Positions 10,434-13,600 of a DNA stretch of 64,000 bases are shown here, piece by piece. Below the pieces are notes generated by a model. The model ran no database searches and was not told the DNA's origin. It worked only from the letters and a program-made list of their open reading frames with translations. Position numbers and translations under genes: made by a program. Position 1 is the first letter of the stretch, and each line of letters begins with the position of its first letter. The DNA is from Phallusia mammillata (taxonomy: Eukaryota): the NCBI GenBank assembly GCA_965637545.1, contig OZ281497.1:19282001-19346000 (forward strand). Reading direction: 5' to 3'.

Positions 10434-10517
10434 CTATAGTATGGAGCAACAGCAGTCTTGGTCGTCTACTGGAGCCGGGTTCCTAGAGTTGATCTGTTTG
10501 ACTAATTCGAAGAATAC
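10434..10517 (-). CDS. RAP1: Alternative terminal exon B of RAP1 (VFFELVKQINSRNPAPVDDQDCCCSIL*)
   Basis: Phase-0 acceptor (ccttcaccaatcgacag|GTATTC). Homologous to exon A ([10 protein letters not shown] vs VFFELVKQIN). Ends in a CAAX box. No transcript evidence available. Confidence 0.75.
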   Translation of the reverse strand, partial: VFFELVKQINSRNPAPVDDQDCCCSIL

Positions 10518-10683
10518 CTGTCGATTGGTGAAGGCACACAGTGAAACACACACATATGATTGAATGAATTGTTTTTGCACTTGACCTTGGAGCTGGGCGG
10601 TGGGGGCATGGGTGATTTTAGGGGTGGAGTGTGGGTACTTACCAAGCTGTTCTGATAGAAGGGGTGGGAAAATAGCATTAAAA

Positions 10684-13600
10684 TTACAAGAGGGCACATC
10701 CAGAGCTCTTCTTTTTCTTTCTCTTTGGCTCGGGAGTTTTTTTATTGATTTGCTTGACAAGGTCGAAAAAGATCTGGGGGTTTATCAAATAACATTTTGT
10801 GTGTTTACAAAAACATTCTAATGAACAGATTTCGTTGTACACATTTAAGATGCACATTGAAAACATGTTTATTTTTTATATATCGTAGTTTTATTATTTT
10901 TATTACCAAATGATTTATAACATGAACTTCTTTTGTTTATTTCATTAAATTGGCAAGGATATTGTTACAGTTAACTTTACTAAACTGTTAAGAATTGACA
11001 TTCGTCATACATATAATGCCAAAAATACAAATAGGCAACAGTCAGATTTACTGTTATTTTTTTACAAACAGATACCAACTTAAAATGTGATGTCAATTTG
11101 TAGGTATTAGGTAACATGATCAATTTACCGATTAAATAGTTACTTACATTTTCAACATTGATTTTTGATTTTGCAGAAGTTTCCAGAAAGGAGCTGAAAA
11201 GCAGACATAAAAAAATGTTATCTCCACATGCGTACAATTTTCATAGATGATTTTCTACACAAACAAATGGTCCAGAGTTACACACCTACGCCATTCCTTT
11301 GCAAGTTGTTCACCCTGCTCTCGTGTCACAATTCTTTCATCTTCCAAATCACATTTGTTTCCCACAAGAATCATGGGCACCTAAGTATACAAGGATAGAA
11401 TATAAATAAATAAATAAAATTTCTATGATTTTTTTTTATCATTCTAAGAGAAGTGCGACAGTCTGTCAAAATATAAAAGTAGGCAAATCTTACATAAACG
11501 TTGGAAAAGCAACATGTAAGGGAGCTTTTCTAATATGTCTTGCTTTATCTATATTGCAGTGTATACCCTGTGTATCGTGTAACCAACCAAACCTGCAACT
11601 CAATATGGCATTTCATGTTAAAGTGTCTAAAAATAGCCATGGACTTTCTACTCAATATGTCAGCTTTGTTGTACTTAAACAAAACTCAAGTTAGTTTTAT
11701 GTGTCAAAGTTCATTATTCAACACTAGAAGTACATTTCTCTGTACTCTCCCACATTTCTGTCCATAGTAAACACACACTAAACAGCCACAGAAAATATAA
11801 ACACAAAAAAGTAGCTTCCAGATTTAATATAAACCCAAAATAAATATTCTCATCATAATTATTTCTTTAATTCAGTCTTGTTTTTTTATGTTAAACAATA
11901 ATCATGAGACAACGTTATAAAAAAATATTCACTGCATGAAAGAGAAGTTTATGTCAATATGTCACAGCATGTTGTTGCTCAAAGCTAACAAGCCAAAAAC
12001 AACATGAGGATTAGAATACATGTGTTGTCCACTACATCTCAAACAGCACATACAAAACAAGATGTGACCTGTAGTATGAAGGATGATATTATGGGGATAT
12101 TGCCCAAAAGACTGAACCTGGCTCTTCAATAAACACAACAACTTCCTTTTAGGCCAAACCAGTCAACTGACACCGTCATTAACACACAGTTTCGAACCTT
12201 CTGCCACCTATAGCTTAAGTGTTTTTTTGTGAGTACTTTCTGTCAGTAGAAAGGTTTTCAGGAACAGTACACTTGCCCACATTGCCTTCTTGTATAGGGT
12301 ACTTTCTCATTAGCGTTAAGTTATAAAACGCACAAAAAATTTGTTTACCGAGTAGGTACACAGTACATCATACCAGGTATGCTGGTATAAGGTGATAAAA
12401 TGTTATTAACATTAAGAAGTATGAAACTGGCATTAAATCATTTTGACTTGTTTAACAACCTAAGTTGCGTAATGTAATTTTATGGCCCTTTTTAAAAATG
12501 TATAGCAGAAATATTTCATATCACCTGTTAAAAAAATATTACATAGAGTGTCCAACAAAAAATAGCATCACAAACAGTCTCTTTGCACTGCAAACACATT
12601 AAAATAACTATTCACCTCCGAAGAACTGTTAATGGTTTGGCAGATGCCTCTTTTGACAACTTAAGTGGGGCATTTGAAACTACAAATGTGCTCTGTGAGT
12701 TTGAAGTAACATTTGTTTCAGGCCACAATCATACCAAGCAAAATATTGTTTCACGATTGCTCAGGCATACCAATTGAAAGAGTGTTAAATTTTTTTCTGG
12801 TAAAAGGTTTTGCCCAACTGGTGTGTTCTTACTAAGCATGTTGTTGTCATTAGGAAATTCTGACCATTTACTAAGTGCTAAAATTGGGGAATATTATTTT
12901 GATGGTTTATATAGCTACGTTTACTTCTACACCTGTACATCTACATTAAATTTAAGAAGCCTGTAAAATTAATATGACACAAGTATTTTGAATAAAATTG
13001 AAAAATTACTACTGACATATTTAGTGACAAAAAGTGTTGAATTGGGATAAAATAGTACAAACCTTATTTTTTACTAATGACATACAAATATTGCAATATA
13101 TTACCTCATCTGTGTCCTTTACTCGCAGAATTTGTTCTCGCAAATCCGACAAGTCATTAAATGATGCCTGTGAGGTAATGCTGTAGACAAGCACGAATCC
13201 CTGGCCATTTTTCATGTACAAATCCCTCATTGCTGTGAATTGTTCCTAAAATGCACACATGGTAAAATTAGAAAAGGATCAATTGTTTAAGATTCCATTC
13301 GTCAAAATAGCTGATAGATTGCTATATGAGTCTGATCAGAACTTATGCAAATTCAGGTCATTTTCAAAAGCTGTTGCTTAGCACAGTGGATTGAGTTTTA
13401 CTTTGTCAGTATGTACAAAAATTGGCACTTGTTTTGAAAGGTTTGGTAGTTTTTAATGTGCACTACACAAAATAAAATATTGCGGATTTTTTTTTTACAA
13501 AAACAGTACAAAAAAGCAAGCTTAAATTAACATTTGTATTTTTAAACCTGTATCTAAGTTATACAGCAAATTCTGTTTTAGGCTATTTATTGTTATGAAT

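Follow-up and report, generated by a model that had tools for sequence, protein, structure and literature searches.

Mutually exclusive tandem exons of an ascidian Rap1 gene encode a polybasic and a probably palmitoylated membrane anchor

A C-terminal CaaL box is a signal for geranylgeranylation, and cysteines beside the prenylated one are S-palmitoylated in Rap2b, H-Ras, N-Ras, KRAS4A, and brain CDC42. Trading a basic cluster for added cysteines is the classic way in which one second membrane signal replaces another (Hancock et al., 1990, as cited in PMC11401852). Human Rap2b is palmitoylated at two cysteines of the motif EGCCSAC, C176 and C177, with two residues between them and C180, the CAAX cysteine, and Rap2b that lacks these sites goes to the cytosol (PMC11401852). 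A single gene can also offer both kinds of tail, and among all 167 human genes of the Ras superfamily only KRAS and CDC42 were found to swap the targeting tail by 3' alternative splicing (Garcia-Espana and Philips, PMC9882654); RAP1A and RAP1B are absent from the list of C-terminal splice cases in that survey (PMC9882654). The two KRAS exons, 4A and 4B, are homologous, arranged in tandem, and used exclusively of each other, and either of them supplies the last part of the G domain together with the hypervariable region and the CAAX box; one of the tails is polybasic and the other palmitoylatable, and the upstream exon has its own stop with further exon sequence after it (PMC9882654). Exon 4A came from NRAS by exon shuffling (PMC9882654). 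In CDC42, alternative 3' exons swap the tail between a canonical form with a prenyl group and a polybasic run and a brain form with a palmitoylated CCaX box.

The Rap1 gene analyzed here lies in a window of 64,000 nucleotides of the ascidian Phallusia mammillata (GenBank assembly GCA_965637545.1, contig OZ281497.1, positions 19,282,001 to 19,346,000), and all positions below are counted from the first letter of this window. Its exons A and B share with the KRAS pair the tandem homology, the exclusive use, the coding content, and the stop of the upstream exon with further exon sequence after it, with the polybasic tail in A and the palmitoylatable one in B. Unlike in KRAS, the polybasic exon is the upstream one and gives the major form, each of the two exons has its own stop and, in our model, is spliced to a last exon that is separate and non-coding, and the CaaX box ends in leucine, the geranylgeranyl type, and not in a farnesyl-type residue. 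The likeness of exon B to exon A moreover speaks for a tandem duplication in place, an origin unlike that of KRAS exon 4A. CDC42 has the exchange of the tail by alternative 3' exons in common with the tunicate gene, but it belongs to the Rho family, its pair is a vertebrate one, and it uses alternative last exons, whereas the tunicate pair consists of penultimate exons with a shared 3'UTR.

Our model, to which we assign a probability of about 0.82, is that a single Rap1 gene uses the mutually exclusive exons A and B to give its product either a polybasic or a probable palmitoyl anchor, with one 3'UTR shared by both forms. The penultimate exon would have been tandemly duplicated long ago, and the copies would be used in a mutually exclusive way, each of them encoding the final turns of helix alpha5, all of the hypervariable membrane-targeting tail, the CaaL box, and the stop, and each then being spliced to the one 3'UTR exon. 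Exon A would provide the usual Rap1 anchor, a geranylgeranyl group with a run of lysines and arginines, and this would be the major form, whereas the tail from exon B would be acidic or without charge and would have two further cysteines adjoining the prenylated one, which are probably palmitoylated. The same G domain could in this way be sent to different membrane domains, depending on whether A or B is included.

The sequence-only reading that preceded this analysis named no precedent in vertebrate RAP1A/B, and the arrangement is less unfamiliar than that reading had assumed. In the literature searched, Rap1 tail isoforms are not described for any animal, and the papers on ascidian Rap1 make no mention of isoforms, but RefSeq has predictions of both forms for Ciona intestinalis and Clavelina lepadiformis. 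These predictions, X1 and X2 in each species, are automatic ones, and they are direct orthologues with the same pair of exons, the same order, and the same tail types. The Rap1 tail-exon swap is thus already predicted in two ascidians, and yet we found no published description of it.

By translation and inspection of the splice sites, the gene extends on the minus strand from 14261 to 10434 with seven coding exons (Table 1). The six constitutive coding exons amount to 465 nt and have no internal stop, and the last 3'UTR exon runs about 1.6 kb further below 7500, as judged from the lengths of the RNA contigs (X1 record 1 continues for 1609 nt past 7500).

Table 1. Exons of the Rap1 gene of Phallusia mammillata, in positions of the window.
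Feature	Position	Strand	Content and evidence
Rap1 coding exon 1	14205..14261	-	start codon 14261, P-loop GSGGVGKS; in-frame assembly
Rap1 coding exon 2	14031..14099	-	effector region, Ser39; aligns to exon of the L025 species
Rap1 coding exon 3	13723..13779	-	DTAGT, Thr61; translation, blastn alignment to the L025 species
Rap1 coding exon 4	13105..13245	-	translation, alignment to the L025 species
Rap1 coding exon 5	11286..11380	-	NKCD motif; joint 11286/11193 in 4/4 RNA runs
Rap1 coding exon 6	11148..11193	-	ETSAK motif; donor gtaagt at 11147, feeds A or B
Exon A (major form)	10643..10773	-	joints 11148>10773 and 10643>7672 in 4/4 RNA runs, depths 13.6-405
Exon B (minor form; end at 10391 probable)	10391..10517	-	joint 11148>10517 in run X17, depth 14.3
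Stretch past the exon B donor	10092..10390	-	in the sole exon 6-B contig; read-through or alternative 3' end
Shared last (3'UTR) exon, start	7500..7672	-	acceptor ...ttacag|GTGTCG; 10643>7672 in four runs

The assembled coding sequence contains the G1-G5 motifs of a Ras-fold G domain, including ETSAK, and the orthologues from Ciona and Clavelina, to which 145-146 of the 155 residues of the Phallusia G domain are identical, carry the Pfam domain PF00071 (Ras). We take Thr61 in place of the Gln61 of Ras to be the signature of Rap proteins, and Ser39 in place of the Phe39 of Rap2 to be that of Rap1. Both are present in the Phallusia protein (Thr61 in LDTAGTEQF), whose closest named proteins are Rap1 or Rap-1b, and isoform A has the Rap1 tail with its polybasic run and a CaaL box (CALL). 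We take the locus to be the single Rap1 gene of this ascidian.

Behind an acceptor ...ccccag, exon A encodes 29 residues that comprise the end of helix alpha5, the lysine/arginine run, and CALL; its stop TAA at 10686-10684 is followed by 41 nt of UTR and the donor GT at 10642-10641 (G|GTAAGT). Exon B begins behind an acceptor ...cgacag and encodes 27 residues, namely the end of helix alpha5 and a non-basic tail ending in DDQDCCCSIL, and behind its stop TAG at 10436-10434 there are 43 nt before a G|GTAAGT at 10390, which matches the donor consensus. The two exons thus show what is seen in mutually exclusive tandem exons: they are adjacent (125 nt between them, 256 nt from start to start), homologous, of similar length (131 nt for A, 127 nt for B), and of the same phase, which is phase 0, and the predicted proteins have 184 residues in the A form and 182 in the B form. 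Within the first ten residues, which form the end of helix alpha5, eight are identical between A and B, and five of these eight are specified by different codons, while the non-coding parts of the exons cannot be aligned to each other. A peptide match that persists despite differing codons and unalignable non-coding parts argues for an old duplication whose likeness has been held at the protein level, and the resemblance of the two exons reads as just that, with chance likeness excluded. The sequence-only reading had already recognized two tandem phase-0 exons with homologous starts, each with its own acceptor, stop, and CAAX box, and had described the first tail as polybasic with CALL and the second as DDQD plus CCCSIL with two extra cysteines, all of which is borne out by the sequence and its translation. 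It had let the exons end at their stops, however, and this has to be corrected, as A runs on to 10643 and B probably to 10391, each up to its G|GTAAGT.

Runs of one organism from six studies were available, and RNA contigs from four runs, which belong to four studies, were placed on positions 7500-11420; the joints are given after a shift of +2 for 10643>7672 and of +3 for the joint of exon B, for which raw 10514/11145 corresponds to 11148>10517. In all four runs, the joints read CT..AC on the plus strand, as GT..AG introns of a minus-strand gene would, and the contigs therefore derive from RNA. The joint 11148>10773 between exon 6 and exon A is present in each of the four runs, in contigs with depths of 405, 130, 131, and 13.6, and so is the joint 10643>7672 between exon A and the last exon, which skips 2970 nt including exon B. 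Exon A is thus internal: it bears the stop, and a long last exon without coding sequence comes after it. The joint 11148>10517, in which exon A is skipped and exon 6 is connected to exon B, was found in one of the four runs, X17, in a single contig of 456 nt (X17 record 9) that has 33 nt on the side of exon 6. Its depth in X17 is 14.3, in comparison with 131 for A, and thus roughly a tenth, with contig depths being a poor measure of such ratios because assembly drops rare branches, so that the other runs may have lost B. Both junctions named in the sequence-only reading, from exon 6 to A and from exon 6 to B, are therefore found in spliced RNA, and its expectation that one gene gives rise to a polybasic Rap1 form and a cysteine-rich form with a Rap2-like tail is supported by the two joints and by the conservation of exon B described below.

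The same reading had regarded the two exons as alternative terminal exons, which does not agree with the joint 10643>7672 of exon A in all four runs. For exon B, it could still apply in Phallusia, where B might be a terminal exon that has its own 3'UTR and polyadenylation site and leaves its GTAAGT unused. The sole exon 6-B contig, X17 record 9, would fit such an exon, as it runs unbroken from 10514 to 10092, straight through the G|GTAAGT of exon B, and close to an AATGAA motif at about 10127-10122 its depth drops by half, from 14.3 to 7.06; in addition, no joint from B to 7672 is listed among the contig joints of the four Phallusia runs. However, rare branches are lost from contigs, and both modes of using exon B may coexist. 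The intron is covered at low depth (about 5-21) in three runs, which indicates that unspliced RNA is present in these libraries. A G|GTAAGT follows 19-43 nt past the stop of exon B in four of four genomes, even though the flanks do not align, and in an mRNA of a relative, L047, exon B is followed by the 3'UTR exon that also follows exon A. We therefore consider a terminal exon B unlikely, and infer that the donor of exon B is used in Phallusia as well.

The mRNAs of this relative, an environmental tunicate-like species, encode the proteins P0274 (A type) and P0275 (B type), which have identical G domains, and the corresponding transcripts L042 (A) and L047 (B) come from marine metatranscriptome and RNA runs. 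The two transcripts have the same coding sequence for the first 465 nt but for a single SNP, they then differ over a segment of 123 nt versus 131 nt, and the remaining 402 nt of L047, which are 3'UTR, are identical again; the transcripts rejoin 36 and 41 nt after their stops. The identity on both flanks of the swapped segment shows that two mutually exclusive exons lie between the same neighbours. In each case, one mRNA contains one copy: in Phallusia, A occurs without B in all four runs and B without A in one run, a count that leaves the downstream joint of B aside, and the same is true for L042 and L047. Full-length mRNAs of the B type are also present in several independent runs. We conclude that exons A and B are mutually exclusive penultimate exons preserved by selection, with a 3'UTR exon that both share in the relative and probably also in Phallusia. 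A search for inverted repeats around exons A and B that could act as docking and selector RNA pairs gave nothing convincing.

In vertebrates, junction-dependent nonsense-mediated decay has a limit of roughly 50-55 nt between stop and junction. In each of the ten exons examined, the donor comes 19-43 nt after the stop, which is below this limit, and the spacing may be maintained to let both stops pass as normal ones. If an mRNA contained both exons, the stop of A would be 168 nt away from the last junction, and such an mRNA would presumably be degraded. The short distance makes the gene a test case for how mutually exclusive exons that bear stops escape nonsense-mediated decay.

For the comparison with other tunicates, the metagenome collection was scanned with a degenerate DNA pattern that represents the alpha5 peptide common to both exons, which gave 34 loci. 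Four of these, L006, L022, L025, and L029, agree with one another in 699-700 of 700 nt and represent ascidian host DNA in four JGI metagenomes, with the orthologous gene on it. In L025, exon B lies 184 nt downstream of exon A and encodes 30 residues ending in CCSSCSIL, and 39 or 42 nt after the respective stop a G|GTAAGT follows. Synonymous sites are saturated between this species and Phallusia (pS 0.78), and in a blastn comparison of the two only coding exons can be aligned, including 43 nt of exon B, with no alignment of introns or UTRs. In exon B, pN is 0.22 and 19 of 30 residues are identical, which marks it as a coding exon under purifying selection.

With an alignment of the A and B tails of Phallusia and the L025 species as query, the Rap1 protein H2ZGP3 of Ciona savignyi was found, whose 90% cluster contains four records of Ciona intestinalis named 'ras-related protein RAP-1B homologue'. 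Two of these are of the A type, with 184 residues and a polybasic tail (NP_001027758.1 and isoform X1, XP_078485134.1), and two are of the B type, with 182 residues and the ends CCCTIL or CCCNIL (isoform X2, XP_078485135.1, and XP_026690210.1). A search with the whole protein returned the 'Rap-1b-like' protein of Clavelina lepadiformis, with X1 of the A type and X2 of the B type ending in CCSSCSIL, and also transcript-derived proteins with B tails. In the genomic sequences of Ciona (L037) and Clavelina (L040/L041), exon A comes first and exon B about 200 nt later, and the distances from stop to G|GTAAGT are 19 and 22 nt in L037 and 28 and 35 nt in L040. The layout of A followed by B, each with a stop and a G|GTAAGT within 19-43 nt, is therefore common to Phallusia, Ciona intestinalis, Clavelina lepadiformis, and the ascidian of L025. 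The conservation of exon B that the sequence-only reading had proposed to check is seen in at least six other tunicate sequences, which keep the frame, the three cysteines, and a C-[ST/N]-[IL]-L box. Outside the tunicates, the Phallusia G domain is identical to Rap1 of snail, bivalve, beetle, fish, and sponge at 130-134 of 155 positions. As an observation of its own, the Rap1 gene of the bivalve Mya arenaria (L048) contains a separately organised alternative block of two exons.

The conservation also bears on whether exon B might be a decaying relic of the duplication, with the joint from exon 6 to B as splicing noise that does not lead to a protein. The low abundance of B, its joint in one of four runs, and the fact that isoform B of Phallusia has no cluster of its own in the protein collection could be read in this way, and a word search of the protein collection with the 108-residue ORF spanning exon B (region 68-108) gave no match. 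This blank can be explained by the B isoforms sitting in 90%-identity clusters that are headed by A isoforms. Moreover, a relic would hardly keep its frame, stop, three cysteines, CaaL box, acceptor, and donor in at least six tunicate sequences across saturated synonymous divergence, nor would it be expected in full-length B-type mRNAs from several independent runs, and we regard this explanation as extremely improbable.

The tails of A and B differ consistently. Among 15 tails from at least seven taxa, those of the A type have a net charge of +5 to +7 (+7 in isoform A of Phallusia) and one cysteine, whereas those of the B type have a net charge of -2 to +1 and exactly three cysteines, and all tails of both types end in C-a-a-L. 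Isoform B thus keeps the CaaL box (CSIL) without the polybasic run, and at the level of sequence the two exons carry different second membrane signals, a polybasic run in A and acylatable cysteines in B. In L025, Clavelina, and the environmental species, the cysteines of the B tail are spaced as CC-x-x-C, and in Phallusia and Ciona they are contiguous (CCC). Like the B tails, those of Rap2A, Rap2B, and Rap2C lack a polybasic run and have a pair of cysteines shortly before that of the CaaX box, and the CC-S-A-C of Rap2b matches the spacing of CC-S-S-C in the L025 and Clavelina B tails (PMC11401852).

From this pattern, we consider it likely that the tail of isoform B is S-acylated, and isoform B would then be a Rap1 G domain on a prenyl-plus-palmitoyl anchor. 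The B isoform could also be real without its extra cysteines being palmitoylated, if these served for a second prenyl group, as in the CCaX box of brain CDC42, or had another role. The contiguous cysteines of Phallusia and Ciona (CCC-x-I-L), which differ from the CC-x-x-C of Rap2b, would be compatible with such a role, but a tail that has lost all its basic clusters and gained exactly two cysteines beside the CaaX cysteine shows the classic exchange of second signals, and four B tails have exactly the spacing of Rap2b, so that we hold palmitoylation to be the better explanation and a role of another kind to be quite unlikely.

The resemblance to Rap2 is confined to the tail. Helix alpha5 of Rap2 is of the type F-A-E-I-V-R-Q-M, and isoform B differs from Rap2 in having a Rap1-type helix alpha5 (FF-E-LVKQIN), the G domain of Rap1, and Ser39; its first 155 residues are those of isoform A. 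Isoform B is thus, as its sequence reads, a Rap1 with a Rap2-like anchor. A derivation of exon B from a Rap2 gene was considered and judged unlikely, as its alpha5 part is closest to exon A. Compensation for a lost Rap2 by the B form was considered as well and is disfavoured, as a survey counts one RAP2 in Ciona (PMC3141262).

The ascidian gene would be the third independent case of such a tail swap after KRAS and CDC42; it is found in the sister group of the vertebrates and is conserved across ascidians, and it supports the view that a choice of second signal, polybasic or palmitoyl, has been used repeatedly to direct one GTPase to two membrane environments. It is conceivable, and we put this forward tentatively, that anchor splicing of Rap1 is old and recurrent in animals, with the tunicate pair and the block of L048 as independent inventions of the polybasic-versus-cysteine switch known from vertebrate KRAS and CDC42, and that the tunicate B pool is dynamically palmitoylated, Rap2-like, and has a developmental role of its own. 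Rap1 signalling has been linked to the formation of the notochord lumen in Ciona (PMC11978462), and as ascidian embryos are easily electroporated and imaged, the function of each Rap1 anchor is directly testable.

Some minor observations concern the searches themselves. In a search of PDB sequences with exon B, only a chance match was obtained, and exon 4, when searched against the whole library, mostly retrieved mis-predicted or fragmentary representatives. The pattern scan of the metagenome collection also matched bacterial contigs, two of which are labelled as human gut metagenomes (L007 and L030), and the comparison leaves these contigs aside.

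Rap1 tail switching is not confined to tunicates, as the bivalve Mya arenaria carries alternative Rap1 tail blocks at its Rap1 locus (L048). The organization differs from that of the tunicate gene: in Mya, the final two coding exons are present twice, having been duplicated together as a block. One of the blocks encodes a serine-rich tail that ends in CCCVML and corresponds to RefSeq isoform X1, and the tail of the remaining block is polybasic with a single cysteine.

Positions of the duplicated Mya arenaria exon blocks and of the GC-rich island in the Phallusia mammillata window
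Feature	Sequence	Positions	Location	Basis
Block of last two coding exons, Mya arenaria Rap1	L048 (GCA_026914265.1)	20977-21123 + 23486-23587		
Other copy of this block	L048 (GCA_026914265.1)	28646-28801 + 29750-29839		
GC-rich island	window	8500-9100	within the intron separating exon B from the last exon	base composition

Across invertebrates, Rap1 anchors vary more than would be expected from the vertebrate pair. Nematode Rap-1 representatives from the protein search have tails ending in K-CCC-x-x-M/L or CC-K-C, combining basic residues and several cysteines in one tail, and CC-x-x ends are found in some flatworm and annelid Rap1 tails (variable tails of these three groups: P0159, P0227, P0257, P0262, P0271, P0253). 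In the case of Anthonomus grandis, the Rap1 RefSeq isoforms X2 (P0166) and X1 (P0170), both of 184 aa, differ in the tail only, and each tail is polybasic with one cysteine; this is a further pair of alternative tail exons, in which the anchor type is unchanged.

The metagenome scan with the degenerate DNA pattern for the shared alpha5 peptide also returned four JGI contigs of 13-19 kb (L006, L022, L025, L029) that consist of ascidian nuclear DNA and are near-identical among themselves, presumably representing host DNA in ascidian-associated samples. Matches L007 and L030, on contigs labelled human gut metagenome, have no relation to the Rap1 exon pair and were left out; at least L030 looks bacterial, judging from a RelA/SpoT-like ORF.

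Downstream of exon B, the GC-rich island has a GC content of 56%, compared with a window mean of 38%, and contains several TGACGT motifs. A contig from RNA run X1 spans window positions 8048-10670 without a gap at a depth of 21, whereas coverage by this run is absent from its other Rap1 introns. The island may represent a promoter embedded in the intron, a mobile element or alternative 3'UTR sequence.
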